Assembly: GCF_963921235.1 (NCBI RefSeq)
Contig: NC_086123.1
Span: 30,938,001-31,002,000, forward strand
Length of the DNA stretch: 64,000 bases
Reading direction: 5' to 3'
From: Mobula hypostoma
Taxonomy: Eukaryota
Positions 12,391 to 60,350 of this stretch are shown piece by piece (within the stretch, counting starts at the first letter, position 1; each line of letters opens with the position of its first letter). The translations under genes and the position numbers were made by a program. The notes under the pieces are model-generated. The model worked only from the letters and a program-made list of their open reading frames with translations. It was not told the DNA's origin and did no database searches.

Positions 12391-12421
12391 CACAGTTCAC
12401 TCAACCGTCCGCGGGAGTAAA

Positions 12422-13114
12422 TCAGCCTCCACGTAGCCGGAGCAGCAGAGAGATGGTGGTTAGTGGTCTGATGTTGTAGTCGGAGAGCAATCGCCCATCC
12501 TCCAACTGTTTGCCCTCGTAAACCAGGCGCTGCTGGTCGGGTCTGACCCCCTCCTGCCGATGGACCCGCTCTTTAAAATTCTGCACGGACTCAGAGGGCA
12601 TCACATCGTACGTCGAGGTTTTCCCCTTTTCATTCAGGAGAAATATCTGCATGGATTCCTCTTTGCTAACCAACATGATGGTGGTTTGTGGTCTGATGTT
12701 GTAGTCGGAGAGCAATCGCCCATCCTCCAACTGTCTGCCCTCGTAAACCAGGCGCTGCTGGTCGGGTCTGACCCCCTCCTGACGATGGACCCGCGCTTTA
12801 AACTTCTGCACGGACTCAGAAGGCATCACGTCGTACGTCGAGGTTTTCCCCTTGTCATTCCGGAGAAATATCTGCATGGATTCCTCTTTCGTGACCAGCA
12901 ACATGACGGTGGGGCTGGGGTTGAGGTTGTAGTAGCTCAGACTTCTCTGGTCTTGCATCTCCACGCTTTGGCCATTTTGCACCATCAGACGCTGTTGGAA
13001 AATGGGCACCTTGGTCTTTTCCTGGATTTTCATCTTGAGAGTCGACACTTGAATGGAAGGGTCGACATCAAGGTCGAAACCATCGCCGCTGATAAACCTC
13101 ACCTGAAGTCTCAT
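12422..13114 (-). CDS. ISG15: ISG15-like modifier A, three Ubl domains (230 aa), C-terminal LRLRGG
   Basis: Divergent N-terminal Ubl followed by two near-identical Ubl domains. The [11 protein letters not shown] motif resembles human ISG15 RNNKGRSSTYEV. Ends LRLRGG-stop, with no internal GG. Splice acceptor 12 nt upstream of the ATG; ISRE promoter upstream. Confidence 0.85.
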
Positions 13115-17550: not shown

Positions 17551-18604
17551 GAAGAACCGTTGAACCAAAAAATCAATTTACACCTAATTCTTAAAATGCA
17601 TGGACTCATTGATTGATTTACTTTATTTTGCCTCTTCTTGGTCCAACAAGAGTCTTTTAAAGTTTTTAAAAGAATAAAAGGGGCAATTTTTAAACCTTTA
17701 TTTAGGGGTAATTGAGTATTCAGGTTTTAGAAGACAAATGGATTTCAGCCTCGCCACATCAGCAGAATTGGTAGTGAGTAGAGATTCAGAACCTTAATAC
17801 CATCTGCACCAAATGAACGTGTTTCCATTTCAATTACATCTATATCCAAGGCAAGGGGCTGACAAATAGGCAAATATGTGCGGAAGAGGGAATTCATACT
17901 GGAACTTTTGAAAATTGTTTTCACAATTCCATGCTTAATGATGTAGGAAAGGGAGTAAGTGAGGGAAGAGTAACACAGAATGGGGAATAGTGCTATTTGG
18001 ACTTCCAATATTTGCTTAGGATATAATAGGAAAGAATGCAGAATAGCTAATATAATAATTCCATTGTGTAAATTGTTAAATGTGAATTGGGGTTTTTGGG
18101 AATCATGTACATGGTTCAAACGCCACAATCAAACTTTGGTCAAGATACTTCATCTCTTACCAGGGTCTACAGAACTAGATGTAAGCAATCACACAGAAAT
18201 GCCAGTGTTCATACATTCGACTTTTATTAAGAAAAGTCATTTCAAATCATATTGAAAATTTCAATAGTGAACATTGCAAAACATTTAGAACTTCAACGAA
18301 TCTGATTTTATTGAACTATTAATGCTAAAATGAAAATAAAAGTCCATTGGAAGGACACAGTAACTGAAGCAATTCTTGAGGATATTAAGGTAAAGCAGTA
18401 AGTCATCTCCCCTCCCTCCATTAAACCCAATCTTTTTAGTGGGATTTGTTTTAAAACATAGTAAATTGAAATTGCCACAGCAGTTATTTCTGGGTCTTTG
18501 AGTGAGACCAGTTTTGTGTGGGAAGGCATAGACCATCAGATTGTGATCAGCCATTCGGAGTTTCATTGATCTGAACAGGAGGTGCAGATTGCCAGAGTTC
18601 CTTT

Positions 18605-20765
18605 CTTTTTTAATCTTTTTATTAGTTTTCAAGTTCATATACATAATAACAATAGTGATACAAAGAGATTTGAAATACCTTACTGTTAAAAACATATAGA
18701 AAAAAGACTACAAAATAGTACATGTGTAATAGACTTCCAAACTCTTGATATAGTTAATCATGAAGAAAAAAAGAAATAAAAAGAAAAGGATATCGCAAAG
18801 GAAAAACCCCAAAAAAACAACAAAAAAACTGAAAATAGAACTAATTGTTAAACCCCCCAAAAATACAAACAGAACAAAATATTGCTGAACCAATATATTA
18901 GATCGAATAATTAGATCAATTCATTAATGTCATCAACTCTGCTCCTCTATTCGTATATTCTAAGTTAATAAAAAGGATTCAAAAAAGATCAAACTACATC
19001 ATATGAAAACGTTGAATAAATGGCTTCCAAGTCTCTTCAAATTTAACTGAAGGATCAAAAATGACCCTTCTGATTTTTTCTAAATTTAAACATGATATCA
19101 TTTGGGAAAACCATTGAAATGTAGTAAGGGTGGTTGGTCTCTTTCCAATTCAATAAAATGGATCTTCTGGCCATTAATGTGACAAATGCAATCATCCAAC
19201 AGGCTGAAGAAGATAAAGAGCTATGTTCCATCATTGGAAAACCAAAAATTGCCGTAATAGGATGGGGTTCTAAATCAAAATGCACAACTATTGAAATAAT
19301 ATCAAAAATATCTTTCCAAAATTTTTCAAGAGAGGGCAGGACCAGAACATATGAGTCAAAGAAGCCACCTCAGAGTGACATCTGTCACAAACAGGATTTA
19401 CGTGGGAGTTAAAACGAGCTAGTTTATCTTTAGCCATGTGGGCCCTATGCAACACCTTAAATTGTATCAGCGTATGTTTAGCACATATAGAGGAAGAGCT
19501 AATGGAAAAATTTTCTCCCATTTCTCTAAAGGTAAGTGAAGTTGAAGTTCCATTTCCCATTCATTCTTAATTTTATCGGACATACCTGGCTGTATTTTCA
19601 TAATTATATCATAAATAGTTGCTATTAATCCCTTCTTTTCTTTTTAAATCTTTTTCATTAATTTTCAAAATTATAAACAAAATAACAATGTTGATACAAA
19701 GAGATTGGAATAATCTTATTATTAGTAAACATATACAAAAAAGATTTCAAATAACATAGGTATAATAGACTTCCAAACTCATGATGAAATTAACCATAAA
19801 GAAGAAAAAGAAATAAAAAGAAAAAAATATATATAAAGAACTCCCCCCCCCAAAAAAAGAACCAAATACTAAACCCCAAAAAAGCAAACGGATATTAATC
19901 CCTTCTGATTAGGATTTAAACCTAAAATTTTTCCCATGATATCAGTAGAGCGTAAAATCAGAAAGGTAGACAGTGTGGCATGTAAAAAGATTCTTATTTG
20001 TAAGTATCTAAAAAAATGGGATCTCGGCAAGTTATATTTATTAGATAACTGTTCACAAGACATGAAACAGTTATTCAAAAATAAATCATGGAAACATGTT
20101 ATACCCTTCATTTTCCATATCAAAAAGGCTTGATCCTTTGGAGAAAAATTAGATATAATAGTGCTTGATAATATAAATTTGTTCAAACCAAAAAAATTAC
20201 TAAATTGGAACCATTTTCATAAAGTATATTTAATTATTGGATTAACCATTTGTTTATTCAATTTAGAAAACACAAAGGAAAGTGAAGTTCCTAAAATAGA
20301 AACCGGTGAAAACCCTTGTACAGAGTAACCTTCAAGGTCTACCAATTGTGCACTTGGAATTATATCCCAATCTTGTGTCCAAAATATTAAATATCCAATA
20401 TTAATTGCCCAGTATTAAAATCATAAATTCCGCATTGCTAAACCACCATCTTTCTTCGACTTCTGTAAATATTTTTTACTTAACCTAGGATTTTTATTCT
20501 GCCATATATAAGATGAAAGTTTAGAATCAATAGTATCAAAAAAAGATTTAGGAATAAAAATTGGTACCACGTGAAATAGATATAAAAATTTTGGTAGAAT
20601 AATCATTTTAATAGTATTGATTCGGCCAATCAATGGTAGAGACAATGATGACCATTCAGTAAGCAATTGTTTAACCTGACTAATTAACGATAAAAAATTG
20701 AGCTTGAATAAGTCCTTATGTCTCTTATCAATTTTAACCCCCAAGTAAGTAAAAAATTCAGTAAT
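18605..20765 (-). mobile_element. 5'-truncated L1-clade LINE with ~20-bp TSD and a nested L1 3'-end insertion (19637-19892)
   Basis: GRINTIKMIILPKFLYLF and CDRC..HMFWSC zinc finger. TSD cag(a/g)ttgccagagttccttt at 18585-18604 and 20766-20785; nested TSD tattaatcccttct. Confidence 0.85.
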
Positions 20766-20977: not shown

Positions 20978-21066
20978 CAGATAGGCAGGGTAAAGTAACA
21001 AAGTGCTAATGACAGAATTTAGGAATGCAATAAAGTACCACTAAATTATATTTAATCACAGTTCTC

Positions 21067-21780
21067 TTAACCATCAGCGGGAGTAAATCTGCCTCCACCT
21101 AGCCGGAGCAGCAGAGAGATGGTGGTTCGTGGTGTGATGTTGTAGGCGGAGAGCAATCGCCCATCCTCCAACTGTTTGCCCTCGTAAACCAGGCGCTGCT
21201 GTTCGGGTCTGACCCCCTCCCGCCGATGGACCCGCGCTTTAAACTTCTGCACGGACTCAGAGGGCATCACGTCGTACGTCGAGGTTTTCCCCTTGTCATT
21301 CAGGAGAAATATCTGCATGGATTCCTCTTTGCTAACCAACATGACGGTGGTTTGTGGTCTGATGTTGTAGTCGGAGAGCAATCGCCCATCCTCCAACTGT
21401 CTGCCCTCGTAAACCAGGCACTGCTGGTCGGGTCTGACCCCCTCCTGCCGATGGACCCGCGCTTTAAACTTCTGCATGGACTCAGAGGGCATCACATCGT
21501 ACGTCGAGGTTTTCCCTTTGTCATTCCGGAGAAATATCTGCATGGATTCCTCTTTCGTGACCAGCAACAGGACGGTGGGGCTGGGGTTGAGGTTGTAGTA
21601 GCTCAGACTTCTGTCGTCCTGCATCTCCACGCTTTGGCCATTTTGCACCATCAGACGCTGTTGGAAAATGGGCACCTTGGTCTTTTCCTGGATTTTCATC
21701 TTGAGTGTCGACACTTGAATGGAAGGGTCGACAGCAAGTTCGAAACCATCGCCGCTGATAAACCTCACCTGAAGTCTCAT
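21067..21780 (-). CDS. ISG15: ISG15-like modifier B, three Ubl domains (237 aa), altered C-terminus LRLGGG-RFTPADG
   Basis: Paralog of A with CGT>GGT (R>G) in the LRLRGG motif and TGA>AGA stop loss, giving a 7-aa extension. ORF, acceptor and promoter intact. Confidence 0.78.
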   Translation of the reverse strand: MRLQVRFISGDGFELAVDPSIQVSTLKMKIQEKTKVPIFQQRLMVQNGQSVEMQDDRSLSYYNLNPSPTVLLLVTKEESMQIFLRNDKGKTSTYDVMPSESMQKFKARVHRQEGVRPDQQCLVYEGRQLEDGRLLSDYNIRPQTTVMLVSKEESMQIFLLNDKGKTSTYDVMPSESVQKFKARVHRREGVRPEQQRLVYEGKQLEDGRLLSAYNITPRTTISLLLRLGGGRFTPADG

Positions 21781-23283
21781 CTTGTCAAATCGCTGTGGAG
21801 AAAGGAGAAGTGATTAGAGAGTTTTTACATCAGCAGGGCATGAACTATGAGGTATTAATATGGCATTGCCTATAATATCAACATAATTAGACTATTTACT
21901 AAGATCTGTAGACAAGCGGCAAAAGACAAACCACTCTTTCCCTCGCAGTTCTAAAGGAATTTTGAGCCGCAATACTGACAATTGACGGGAGAGGGACTCC
22001 GCGAGCCGGTGGGTTTAAACATTTTTGAACTTGATTCGATTAGCGGCAAAAAAAATATGTAAATGTTACTCATTGGAACCGCAGTAAATGTGCAACTTGT
22101 TTAGATTTCTAAGCCAGGACCATTCCAACCGCAGTTTAATAGGGGAAAAATCACTTCTGTCACATCGCGTTAATGGTGTACCGGGGAGAGCATTCGGACT
22201 TGTTGCATCACCGTCTGATATGTAGGGGCAACGACACAGGGTCAGAAAAAGCTGCAGAGGGTGGTAAACTCATCCAGCTCCATCATGGGCACCAACAGAG
22301 GATATCTTCAAAAGGTGATACCTCACGGAGAGGGCATCGATCATTCTGGGCCTGCAGGTCATGCCCGCTTCTCATTGCTACCACCAGCGAGGAGCTTGAA
22401 GACTCACGCTCAACGTTTCATGAACAGATGAACTACTGAACAGTACTTTTGCTTGTGTGTGTGTGTGTGTGTGTGTGCGCGCGCTATTATAATTTATATT
22501 ATGTTTTATGTACTGTATTGAACTGCCGCCGCAAATTGCCAAATTTATCGATTTAAGTTAGTGGTGATCACCCCAATTCTGATTCTAAATCGATTCTGCT
22601 GAGAATGAACTCCATTTTACTTTCAACCAAACATTCACCCTCCACGCCCGCTTTCCTGCACAGAAAGAGTCCACTCCTGACCCAGACTTCCCGAGTCACT
22701 CAATTCACACGCAAATTATTGTCGTGACATGAACGAAGATTTCATGCACCGTTTAACAAGACCGTTACGCTACATCAGCCGATTAACGGGTTTCACCGAA
22801 CCGTGAGCCTATCAATCTGAGAAGCAGGAGTGGCCATTCGGCCTGCACCGCTATTCAATGATATCCCCGATGATCTTTTACCTCGCCGCCAGTTGACAAC
22901 AATTTGTCGCGGATCTATTGCCACTTTCTGTAAAGTTAGTTTTCTACTAACTTGTTCTCGCCCCGCGTTTTGTCAGCGGTAGAGACTACATTTCCTGCCC
23001 GGTTCAGAGGATCTTAGTAATTTAAATTATACCGTCAATGTTGTAAACAGCTAGATAAAAATGAGAACTTTGAGATAATCAAATAAAGTCTTACAATTTT
23101 TGTCGACAGTGCAGGAAGTCAGGACGAATCTGAAGAAAATCTGATCCGCAGCTTTTTTTCTTTGCCCTTTATTCCGCACCGACTTTCAGCTCTGGTCCGG
23201 GTAAATCAATAGAAATTCTCGGGCTGCTGCTGATCGGTATCCCCGCTCCTGCAACTCTGCGTCTCTCCGCCTCCCCCGGCTCG

Positions 23284-23474
23284 CTTTATCTTCTGCTCCC
23301 GTTTCTGAACGTCACCGCGCCGCTGGGCTGATCTCACGGCCCGCTGTCGCTGTGTTGATAAACAAACCAATCAGGTTCCAGCCGAAGTTTCGTTTCCGAA
23401 AAATTCCCCGCAGGGAATTGGAAATGCATGCGCCCTGTTACAGGGTTCAACGCTATCGGCTGAGTCACTTTCGG
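23284..23474 (-). promoter_or_regulatory. Interferon-responsive promoter of B
   Basis: ISRE 23386-23397, kB-like 23398-23409, perfect AP-1 TGAGTCA 23461-23467 next to CTTTC. Confidence 0.75.
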
Positions 23475-30978: not shown

Positions 30979-31446
30979 TCAGCCTCCACGTAGCCGGAGC
31001 AGCAGAGAGATGGTGGTTAGTGGTCTGATGTTGTAGTAGGAGAGCAATCGCCCATCCTCCAACTGTTTGCCCTCGTAAACCAGGCGCTGCTGGTCGGGTC
31101 TGACTCCCTCCTGCCGATGGACCCGCTCTTTAAACTTCTGCACGGACTCAGAGGGCATCACGTCGTACGTCGTCGTTTTCCCCTTGTCATTCAGGAGAAA
31201 TATCTGCATGGATTCCTCTTTCCTGACCAGCAACATGACGGTGGGGCTGGGGTTGAGGTTGTAGTAGCTTAGACTTCTGTCGTCCTGCATCTCCACGCTT
31301 TGGCCATTTTGCATCATCAGACGCTGTTGGGAAATGGGCACGTTGGTCTTTTCCTGGATTTTCATCTTGAGTGTCGACACTTGAATGGAAGGGTCGACAT
31401 CAAGTTCGAAACCATCGCCGGTGATAAACCTCACCTGAAGTCTCAT
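30979..31446 (-). CDS. ISG15: ISG15-like modifier C, two Ubl domains (155 aa), LRLRGG
   Basis: Canonical ISG15 size and architecture; C-terminal domain about 55% identical to ubiquitin by manual alignment; ISRE promoter. Confidence 0.88.
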
Positions 31447-40558: not shown

Positions 40559-41026
40559 TCAGCCTCCACGTAGCCGGAGCAGCAGAGAGATGGTGGTTAG
40601 TGGTCTGATGTTGTAGTCGGAGAGCAATCGGTCGTCCTCCAACTGTTTGCCCTCGTAAACCAGGCGCTGCTGGTCGGGTATGACCCCCTCCCGCCGATGG
40701 ACCCGCTCTTTAAACTTCTGCACGGACTCAGAGGGCATCACGTCGTACGTCGAGGTTTTCCCTTTGTCATTCAGGAGAAATATCTGCATGGATTCCTCTT
40801 TCCTGACCAGCAACATGACGGTGGGGCTGGGGTTGAGGTTGTAGTAGCTTAGACTTCTCTGGTCCTGCATCTCCACGCTTTGGCCATTTTGCATCATCAG
40901 ACGCTGTTGGGAAATGGGCACGTTGGTCTTTTCCTGGATTTTCATCTTGAGTGTCGACACTTGAATGGAAGGGTCGACATCAAGTTCGAAACCATCGCCG
41001 GTGATAAACCTCACCTGAAGTCTCAT
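40559..41026 (-). CDS. ISG15: ISG15-like modifier D, two Ubl domains (155 aa), LRLRGG
   Basis: As C; variant residues RREGVIP and EDDR. Confidence 0.88.
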
Positions 41027-50280: not shown

Positions 50281-50748
50281 TCAGCCTCCACGTAGCCGGA
50301 GCAGCAGAGAGATGGTGGTTAGTGGTCTGATGTTGTAGTCGGAGAGCAATCGCCCATCCTCCAACTGTTTGCCCTCGTAAACCAGGCGCTGCTGGTCGGG
50401 TCTGACCCCCTCCTGCCGATGGACCCGCTCTTTAAACTTCTGCACGGACTCAGAGGGCATCACGTCGTACGTCGTCGTTTTCCCCTTGTCGTTCAGGAGA
50501 AATATCTGCATGGATTCCTCTTTCCTGACCAGCAACATGACGGTGGGGCTGGGGTTGAGGTTGTAGTAGCTTAGACTTCTGTCGTCCTGCATCTCCACGC
50601 TTTGGCCATTTTGCACCATCAGACGCTGTTGGGAAATGGGCACGTTGGTCTTTTCCTGGATTTTCATCTTGAGTGTCGACACTTGAATGGAAGGGTCGAC
50701 ATCAAGTTCGAAACCATCGCCGGTGATAAACCTCACCTGAAGTCTCAT
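50281..50748 (-). CDS. ISG15: ISG15-like modifier E, two Ubl domains (155 aa), LRLRGG
   Basis: Higher-order-repeat copy of C (offset 19302 bp); 2 aa differences. Confidence 0.85.
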
Positions 50749-51411: not shown

Positions 51412-51540
51412 NNNNNNNNNNNNNNNNNNNNNNNNNNNNNNNNNNNNNNNNNNNNNNNNNNNNNNNNNNNNNNNNNNNNNNNNNNNNNNNNNNNNNNNNN
51501 NNNNNNNNNNNNNNNNNNNNNNNNNNNNNNNNNNNNNNNN
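51412..51540. other. Assembly gap (129 N)
   Basis: Run of N at the position of the intronic CA/TG palindrome. Confidence 1.
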
Positions 51541-59882: not shown

Positions 59883-60350
59883 TCAGCCTCCACGTCGCCG
59901 GAGCAGCAGAGAGATGGTGGTTAGTGGTCTGATGTTGTAGTCGGAGAGCAATCGGCCGTCCTCCAACTGTTTGCCCTCGTAAACCAGGCGCTGCTGGTCG
60001 GGTATGACCCCCTCCCGCCGATGGACCCGCTCTTTAAACTTCTGCACGGACTCAGAGGGCATCACGTCGTACGTCGAGGTTTTCCCTTTGTCATTCAGGA
60101 GAAATATCTGCATGGATTCCTCTTTCCTGACCAGCAACATGACGGTGGGGCTGGGGTTGAGGTTGTAGTAGCTTAGACTTCTCTGGTCCTGCATCTCCAC
60201 GCTTTGGCCATTTTGCATCATCAGACGCTGTTGGGAAATGGGCACGTTGGTCTTTTCCTGGATTTTCATCTTGAGTGTCGACACTTGAATGGAAGGGTCG
60301 ACATCAAGTTCGAAACCATCGCCGGTGATAAACCTCACCTGAAGTCTCAT
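59883..60350 (-). CDS. ISG15: ISG15-like modifier F, two Ubl domains (155 aa), variant C-terminus LRRRGG
   Basis: Higher-order-repeat copy of D (offset 19324 bp); CTA>CGA changes LRLRGG to LRRRGG. Confidence 0.82.

Follow-up and report, generated by a model that had tools for sequence, protein, structure and literature searches.

An ISG15-type paralog of Mobula hypostoma with an altered conjugation motif and a C-terminal tail read through from the 3' untranslated region

Introduction

The ubiquitin-like modifier ISG15 is made in mammals as a pro-form, pro-ISG15, which has an interferon-stimulated response element (ISRE)-type promoter and carries a short, presumably disordered extension (5-8 residues) after its Gly-Gly. 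This tail is cut off ahead of conjugation; ISG15 is activated by UBA7, passed on by UBE2L6 and HERC-type E3s, and taken off its targets by USP18. Human, mouse, rat and several teleost ISG15 proteins have 5-10 extra residues after LRLRGG, and the paralogs ISG15A and ISG15B of Lates calcarifer form a pair with and without a tail of ~10 extra residues (PMC9680060). A literature search on elasmobranch ISG15 found nothing specific. Here we describe an ISG15-type gene, copy B, of the lesser devil ray Mobula hypostoma, whose predicted product ends in LRLGGG-RFTPADG and so combines an altered conjugation motif with a tail. The gene lies on the minus strand of a 64,000-nucleotide (nt) stretch of contig NC_086123.1 (positions 30,938,001 to 31,002,000), hereafter the window, to which all coordinates refer unless a locus label is given.

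A tblastn search of the window with the B open reading frame (ORF) identified six ISG15-type genes, A to F, all on the minus strand and spaced by ~9.6 kb. B is like mammalian pro-ISG15 in its ubiquitin-like modifier type, its short extension after Gly-Gly and its ISRE-type promoter, but it has three domains, its motif reads LRLGGG, and its tail is a recent read-through of the 3' untranslated region (3'UTR) and not a conserved part of the gene. As in the Lates pair, neighbouring ISG15 paralogs include one that ends at LRLRGG and one that is tailed; however, the tailed Lates copy keeps LRLRGG and is reported to be expressed and inducible (PMC9680060), whereas the motif of B is altered and B is known from its sequence alone. 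B also resembles young tandem duplicates under relaxed selection: its lineage has a ratio of nonsynonymous to synonymous rates (dN/dS) near or above 1, conserved residues are changed, the stop is lost, and there are private regulatory substitutions and a transposon insertion in the flank. Unlike incipient pseudogenes, it has no frameshift or premature stop, and its core promoter and splice signals are intact.

We give somewhat better than even chances to the reading that B is a redundant member of the tandem array which has been released from purifying selection, and would now be in early decay with its ORF still intact, or would at best act as a conjugation hypomorph.

Results and discussion

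The C-terminus of copy B

Read on the minus strand, positions 21067-21111 of B are LLRLGGGRFTPADG-stop. The features of this region, and the sister copy that serves as reference, are:

21067-21780, minus strand: copy B, single coding exon, 237 aa, 3 ubiquitin-like domains, LRLGGG-RFTPADG-stop
12422-13114, minus strand: copy A, sister paralog and reference for B, 230 aa, 3 domains, LRLRGG-stop
21097..21099, minus strand: codon 228 of B, GGT (Gly), which is CGT (Arg) in the other five paralogs (C>G at 21099); equivalent to ubiquitin R74 and human ISG15 R155
21088..21090, minus strand: codon 231, AGA (Arg), which is a TGA stop in the other five paralogs (T>A at 21090)
21070..21087, minus strand: tail codons FTPADG, translated 3'UTR homologous to the untranslated stop-FTPADG-stop of the other five copies
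21067..21069, minus strand: the actual stop of B, TAA, at the second in-frame stop position (TGA in the other five)
21418..21420, minus strand: codon 121 in the middle domain, TGC (Cys) versus CGC (Arg) elsewhere, QQRL>QQCL; a CpG transition at 21420, at the site equivalent to ubiquitin R42

Copies A and C-F end in CGT GGA GGC TGA TTT ACT CCy GCr GAC GGT TGA, and B in GGT GGA GGC AGA TTT ACT CCC GCT GAT GGT TAA. Because all six copies share the sequence that follows the motif and its second in-frame stop, the tail of B is a plain read-through of the common 3'UTR. A preliminary description of B had reported R>G giving LRLGGG, stop>Arg giving RFTPADG and QQRL>QQCL in domain 2, with the ORF, splice acceptor and ISRE intact. 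All of this holds: the changes are C>G at 21099, T>A at 21090 and CGC>TGC at 21420, 237 codons are open at 21067-21780, the acceptor is identical to that of A, and the ISRE is identical in the six copies.

Both C-terminal changes are derived, since five of five paralogs and the outgroup proteins of cartilaginous fishes are canonical. The Arg at the codon-228 position is kept in the outgroup sequences compared, except for Cys in one Mobula birostris copy, and the Arg-Gly-Gly end in all other ISG15-type proteins compared (M. birostris, Hemitrygon, skates, sharks and Callorhinchus) bar one M. birostris copy ending in LRLCGG. A stop directly follows the motif in the standalone gene models compared, bar two tailed skate paralogs, and the final unit of a fused Pristis gene model is also canonical at its C-terminus. 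LRLGGG-RFTPADG was found in no other protein of the searched collection; the annotated M. birostris proteins compared include no three-domain form and none that ends in this way. An exact look-up of the B protein returned the genome contig only, and a search with its last domain and tail for read or transcript fragments returned distant ubiquitins only, in a collection that lacks Mobula transcript contigs even for the canonical copies.

That two changes fall within four codons is not clearly beyond chance. At the local private density of B (5.9% across the last domain and 3'UTR), the probability of at least two changes in 12 nt is 0.16; at the private density of the whole coding sequence (CDS) it is 0.022, for one pre-chosen 12-nt stretch.

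The FTPADG-stop frame that follows each stop (12401-12421 in A) varies among the six copies only at third positions: the variable sites in CCCGCGGACGG are CCC/CCT, GCG/GCA/GCT and GAC/GAT, and three of the four changes are CpG transitions. This protein-level likeness is no evidence of past coding, because it reflects mostly CpG transitions, which the CpG layout puts on third positions. The argument from conservation is weakened further by the fact that the entire proximal 3'UTR, and not the FTPADG frame alone, is conserved with skates. An ancestral coding or read-through product was rejected as unproven. We also rejected copying of the B 3' end from a divergent MRVQV-type paralog, since the private residues of B do not match that type.

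Substitutions on the B lineage

Coding differences between A and B were polarized by copies C-F and by the paralogous domains, and 535 replacement and 155 silent sites give a neutral expectation of 78% replacement. On the B lineage we count 10-11 replacements, 1 silent change and the loss of the stop (~13 private coding changes); on the A lineage, 3 replacement and 5 silent changes. The two lineages differ in this ratio (Fisher p=0.018, with B as 11:1): A has fewer replacements than the neutral expectation (p=0.017), whereas B shows no difference from it (11:1, p=0.21). Private divergence of B amounts to ~1.9% in the CDS versus ~2.2% in promoter plus intron (33 in ~1,500 nt). Its last 50 codons contain 6 replacements and the stop loss and no silent change, and the unit as a whole has ~70 private substitutions, five private indels and a private 2.16-kb insertion.

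Six of the replacements (D16A, V102M, R121C, I146V, D212A and R228G) alter residues that vary little or not at all among the other cartilaginous-fish sequences compared. E182A, D193E, R216T and L218R are at naturally variable sites, and the residue of B at 182, 193 and 218 is seen in other species. Judged as a pseudogene, B has neutral substitution on its own lineage, on small counts, and neither a frameshift nor a premature stop; the loss of its stop is the sole stop-related lesion.

Regulatory and flanking sequence

The elements upstream and downstream of the B coding exon are:

23412..23433, minus strand: block just upstream of the ISRE, nearly invariant in the other five copies, with five B-private substitutions within 17 nt (23414-23430)
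23386..23397, minus strand: ISRE, GGAAACGAAACT, identical in all six copies
23282..23291, minus strand: TATA-like element, AGATAAAGCG, ~95 nt downstream of the ISRE, intact in B and homologous to a TATA-like element in skate contig L003
23089..23100, minus strand: candidate exon-1 donor AAAATT/GTAAGA, intact in B, its position inferred from the 173-nt skate exon 1
21793..21794, minus strand: splice acceptor AG, 12 nt ahead of the ATG; CAG/CGATTTGACAAG-ATG (21778-21800) is identical to A
21051..21056, minus strand: proximal ATTAAA hexamer, candidate poly(A) signal, 11 nt after the B stop and present in all copies
18605..20765, minus strand: B-private 2.16-kb insertion, a non-long-terminal-repeat (non-LTR) retrotransposon fragment in sense orientation at a homology break, with a zf-RVT domain at 19288-19560
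18103..18604, minus strand: distal 3' flank of B, displaced by the insertion; its homologue in the other units lies just 3' of the 3'UTR, near a conserved ATTAAA/AATAAA pair

B has the ISRE promoter of ISG15 genes at the level of the motif. Its acceptor, together with spliced skate transcripts, which join 13 nt ahead of their ATG after a 173-nt exon 1, places the whole ORF in the last exon behind a short non-coding exon 1, as in other ISG15 genes. The 2-2.5 kb upstream flanks of the skate loci contain no ISRE, because the skate exon 1 lies further away.

A sixth B-private promoter substitution is at 23464. On the 3' side, the retrotransposon is inserted ~300 nt past the canonical stop position and parts the proximal 3'UTR of B from the distal ATTAAA/AATAAA pair, which the other five units retain. 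Skate ISG15 contigs from public sequencing runs, where spliced, continue for 250-350 nt beyond their proximal ATTAAA, so the distal poly(A) signals may be those that matter. An intact poly(A) signal, as previously described for B, is present in the form of the proximal hexamer; the distal pair is displaced by the insertion. The promoter cluster, the diverged 3'UTR and the retrotransposon would all be regulatory or flank damage private to B, and this favours decay.

The altered motif and the predicted fold

Pfam recognizes three ubiquitin domains in B, and NCBIfam gives only a sub-threshold match to a Rad23 ubiquitin-like model. AlphaFold2, run with a 30-sequence alignment, predicts three confident beta-grasp domains (mean predicted local distance difference test score, pLDDT, of 88.6) and a disordered tail (residues 231-237, pLDDT 46). 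ISG15 proteins have exactly two ubiquitin-like domains and an LRLRGG end that is free or followed by a short removable tail, whereas B has three domains and ends in LRLGGG plus RFTPADG. From its domain make-up and its position, we take B to be a three-domain derivative in an ISG15-type array.

The last domain of B aligns without gaps to ubiquitin 1-76, with LRLGGG corresponding to L71-R72-L73-G74-G75-G76 and the tail beginning after G76. R72, L73, G75 and G76 are retained, and the changed residue is the R74 equivalent and not R72, which gates activation by E1. Phage-display profiling of ubiquitin found E1 to be strict for R72 and relaxed at 71, 73 and 74, while E2 could not pass ubiquitin on to HECT and RING E3s when R74 or G75 was replaced by a non-native residue (PMC3731359). 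In the structure of human Uba7 with ISG15, Arg155 hydrogen-bonds Glu592, and mutation of Glu592 significantly lowers thioester transfer (PMC10409785). These R74 variants affect the same LRLRGG position as the change in B, but they are engineered and were assayed with ubiquitin enzymes, whereas B carries Gly and would act in the ISG15 cascade of a ray. By analogy with them, the R>G change plausibly weakens the cascade, most likely after E1, with the elements known to be indispensable still in place; the motif is probably weakened and unlikely to be dead. The conjugation motif had been called broken: the loss of the Arg equivalent to R74 bears out a weakening, but the term overstates the case, as R72 and Gly-Gly are kept.

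Tails in skates

Homology between Mobula and skates covers both the second in-frame stop and the proximal 3'UTR (ATTAAAA, ATTCCTAT). Leucoraja and several skate contigs assembled from public sequencing runs read GGT TAA TTT GCG CTC GAC TGA (LRLRGG-stop-FALD-stop) here. In two Amblyraja radiata paralogs (160 aa), the codons are GGT TTA, a stop-to-sense change of TAA>TTA, and the proteins end in LRLRGG-LFALD. These tailed copies (L005:2501-2983 and L009:2501-2983) are 37 kb apart; an untailed A. radiata copy is at L010:2501-2968, and L001-L004 and L006-L008 are further skate loci.

The tailed and untailed skate types differ by 13-14 replacement and 2-3 silent changes (dN/dS 1.4-2.0), including QQRL>QQHL, and their CDS divergence exceeds that of the flanks. 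The two tailed copies differ at 4 of 480 nt in the CDS versus 2.1% in the flanks, and this lower CDS divergence suggests that the tailed type is maintained.

The A. radiata paralogs and B thus share a one-base stop-to-sense change into homologous 3'UTR, a tail bounded by a conserved second in-frame stop, and raised replacement change relative to an untailed paralog. They differ in the codon, the tail and the motif (the skate copies keep LRLRGG), and the skate type is present in two copies. From the bases involved, the skate switch is independent of that in B. The preliminary description had also proposed that RFTPADG acts as a C-terminal cap. A tail is indeed there, but tails are a known feature of ISG15 in mammals, teleosts and skates, and that of B is translated 3'UTR.

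Weighing the explanations

Two ordinary point substitutions, CGT>GGT and TGA>AGA, altered the end of B. They belong to a set of ~13 private coding changes that built up at roughly the rate of its own intron, and nearly all of these change the protein. If transcribed from its intact ISRE promoter, B would give a three-domain pro-protein with a disordered seven-residue tail, which a C-terminal hydrolase would need to cut after Gly230 ahead of any use by E1. The trimmed LRLGGG end would be without the Arg that contacts Uba7 Glu592, and, by analogy with ubiquitin R74 variants, its transfer from E2 to E3 would be inefficient. We propose that the two changes sit together without design because, once either had impaired conjugation, the other would be neutral.

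Several observations weigh against this reading. Given five private indels in ~2 kb of B non-coding sequence, ~1.8 would be expected in the CDS if it were strictly neutral, and there are none; nor is there a nonsense change among the ~13 substitutions. The probability of a CDS free of both under strict neutrality is ~0.1, and the intact 237-codon ORF is a weak hint of residual constraint or of very recent relaxation. The replacements are mostly conservative or on the surface of the model, and the protein is predicted to fold well. A count of 11:1 is nominally omega > 1 and compatible with positive selection. The core promoter, ISRE, acceptor and candidate donor are all intact. Tailed batoid ISG15 can persist, as the A. 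radiata type, which looks maintained in two copies, suggests. Finally, concerted evolution among the other copies could render some apparently B-private states ancestral, a doubt that arises because positions 182, 193 and 218 carry the B residue in other species; the 3' flank of B is ~10% diverged from all other units and its 5' part 3-5%.

Some of these observations would suit a working pro-form, in which a cellular hydrolase trims the seven-residue tail after Gly230 and LRLGGG is then conjugated, perhaps in a delayed or gated manner. Tails of 5-10 residues are normal in mammals and several teleosts, and tailed and untailed paralogs exist side by side (PMC9680060). The skate paralogs made the same one-base stop-to-sense switch into homologous 3'UTR, and their two tailed copies are less diverged in the CDS than in the flanks, the opposite of what tailed and untailed copies show. 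In ubiquitin register, R72, L73 and Gly-Gly are all present in B, position 74 is one at which ubiquitin E1 accepts other residues (PMC3731359), the ORF, ISRE and splice sites are intact, and the tail, seven residues placed right after Gly-Gly, is predicted to be disordered and therefore accessible. We nevertheless find a working pro-form unlikely, though a contender. Every tailed ISG15 compared here or described (PMC9680060) keeps LRLRGG, and B does not; the lost Arg contacts Uba7 Glu592 (PMC10409785), and its position is needed for transfer of ubiquitin from E2 to E3 (PMC3731359). A pro-form would have a conserved or recurrent tail on a body under purifying selection, and the B lineage shows no purifying selection and changes at several invariant or nearly invariant sites. 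B is also a single copy without a known ortholog. A pro-form of this sort would not be novel in kind.

Positive selection for a non-conjugatable ISG15, serving as a free or secreted signal or as a decoy that occupies deISGylases (host USP18, viral proteases) without being consumed, we consider improbable. Unconjugated ISG15 has known functions in mammals, and the C-terminally extended ubiquitin UBB+1 acts as an inhibitor. The fold of B is predicted to be intact, the ISRE is retained, and replacement over silent change is nominally above 1 on its lineage, with the last 50 codons showing only replacements and the stop loss. This excess is not significant against neutrality (p=0.21), however, and coding divergence of B equals intronic divergence. 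The changes are spread over all three domains with no focus on a known interface, B has no signal peptide or other new feature, its tail is plain 3'UTR sequence, and decay is suggested by the promoter cluster and the retrotransposon insertion. None of the tests made here lends support to a decoy or secreted role. A broader scheme is that batoid ISG15 keeps a latent but translatable tail (the second in-frame stop, 5-7 codons on, is homologous in skates and devil rays), that one-base toggles repeatedly make tailed paralogs from it, and that B is a selected, protease-gated or deISGylase-resistant (decoy) three-domain member; as a whole we consider this scheme, too, improbable. Least probable of all, and in our view very unlikely, is that the changes in B are assembly or sequencing errors or a private allele of the sequenced individual. 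The B protein is in one genome record only, and tandem arrays are prone to mis-assembly. But B is the most distinct unit, with its ~70 private substitutions, five indels and 2.16-kb insertion, and so of all units the one least expected to be collapsed or chimeric; a chromosome-scale assembly would need to have gone wrong twice within 9 nt, each time by a transversion, and the reference annotation models the same 237-aa protein.

Release of B from purifying selection is thus the reading we prefer. The protease-gated precursor, free or secreted form, or decoy with which the preliminary description led is not supported, given the 11:1 count, the changed conserved sites and the private flank damage; the early pseudogenization that it named as the alternative is the better fit to the neutral-like substitution pattern, the conserved-site changes and the damage to promoter and 3' flank. 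On present evidence, B mainly illustrates how single copies of an extensive, redundant array of immune genes drift, with not even the best conserved motif of the family exempt, and it warns against inferring function for a young duplicate from its open frame. A functional B would be a naturally occurring ISG15 in which the P3 residue is changed and a cap is built in. It would offer a ready-made probe of the need for LRLRGG in the E1-E2-E3 cascade and by deISGylases, and would hint that cartilaginous fishes diversify this antiviral tag by stop-codon toggling. The result that lends itself best to reuse is that stop-codon toggling has recurred at the C-terminus of batoid ISG15, including the independent switch in skates.

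The array and related genes

The remaining members of the array are:

30979-31446, minus strand: copy C, 155 aa, 2 domains, LRLRGG-stop
40559-41026, minus strand: copy D, 155 aa, 2 domains, LRLRGG-stop
50281-50748, minus strand: copy E, 155 aa, 2 domains, LRLRGG-stop
59883-60350, minus strand: copy F, 155 aa, 2 domains, LRRRGG-stop

We assign the array to the ISG15 type because copy E aligns to solved ISG15 chains and each of the six units has an ISRE upstream and a splice acceptor 12 nt ahead of the ATG. The alignment of E is one continuous match of its residues 3-155 to residues 5-157 of these chains (E ~5e-27), and in this end-to-end alignment the two-domain members are like mammalian ISG15. 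Public annotation names the array proteins 'polyubiquitin-like'; the B protein and its neighbours map to a contig of GCA_963921235.1.

Copies A and B are outliers at one edge of the array. Across ~3.5-kb units (window 30979-62100), C and E are 99.0% and D and F 99.3% identical, so the duplication of a two-gene block of ~19.2 kb must be very recent. The LRRRGG of F is due to CTA>CGA at codon 152 (59895-59897), the site equivalent to ubiquitin L73. The whole units of F and D are 99.3% identical all the same, which makes this a very recent change, the second to affect a conjugation motif in the array.

A further altered motif is found in M. birostris, where a divergent MRVQV-type ISG15 (P0027, 155 aa) ends in LRLCGG and has QQCL in domain 1; both changes are of the CpG type, and B is altered at the same two kinds of site. 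Another MRVQV-type copy, within the fused model P0127, keeps LRLRG. Motif changes in other array copies, such as LRRRGG in F and LRLCGG with QQCL in M. birostris, would be expected under weak selection per copy.

The candidate exon-1 donor is AAAATT/GTAAGA in A, B, C and E and AAAATTTTAAGA in D and F (unit alignment columns ~1007-1018), where the candidate is without GT. About 20 nt upstream, C-F have a second candidate donor, CCG/GTACTG; A has a weakened form of it (CCTGTACTG) and B has lost it (CCTGCACTG). Between the coding exon of E and its promoter, 129 N fill positions 51412-51540.

Reference models fuse adjacent ISG15 genes into 'polyubiquitin-B-like' proteins of 345-561 aa (P0001, P0121 and P0122 in M. 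hypostoma, P0123 and P0127 in M. birostris). The linker of these models, MLTPERNPKVNQPIALNP-RFDK, comes from a donor upstream of the ISRE of the next gene, ~55 nt into the aligned promoter block, and the fused Mobula models are candidate read-through transcripts or modelling artefacts. Proteins annotated as head-to-tail double ISG15 (310 aa each) are found in Hemitrygon akajei (P0003), Cetorhinus (P0005 and P0006) and Mustelus (P0007). In these, LRLRGG is followed directly by MRLQV with no linker, as in polyubiquitin. Should these be real single ORFs, their products would be precursors of the poly-ISG15 kind and would have to be cleaved between the units.

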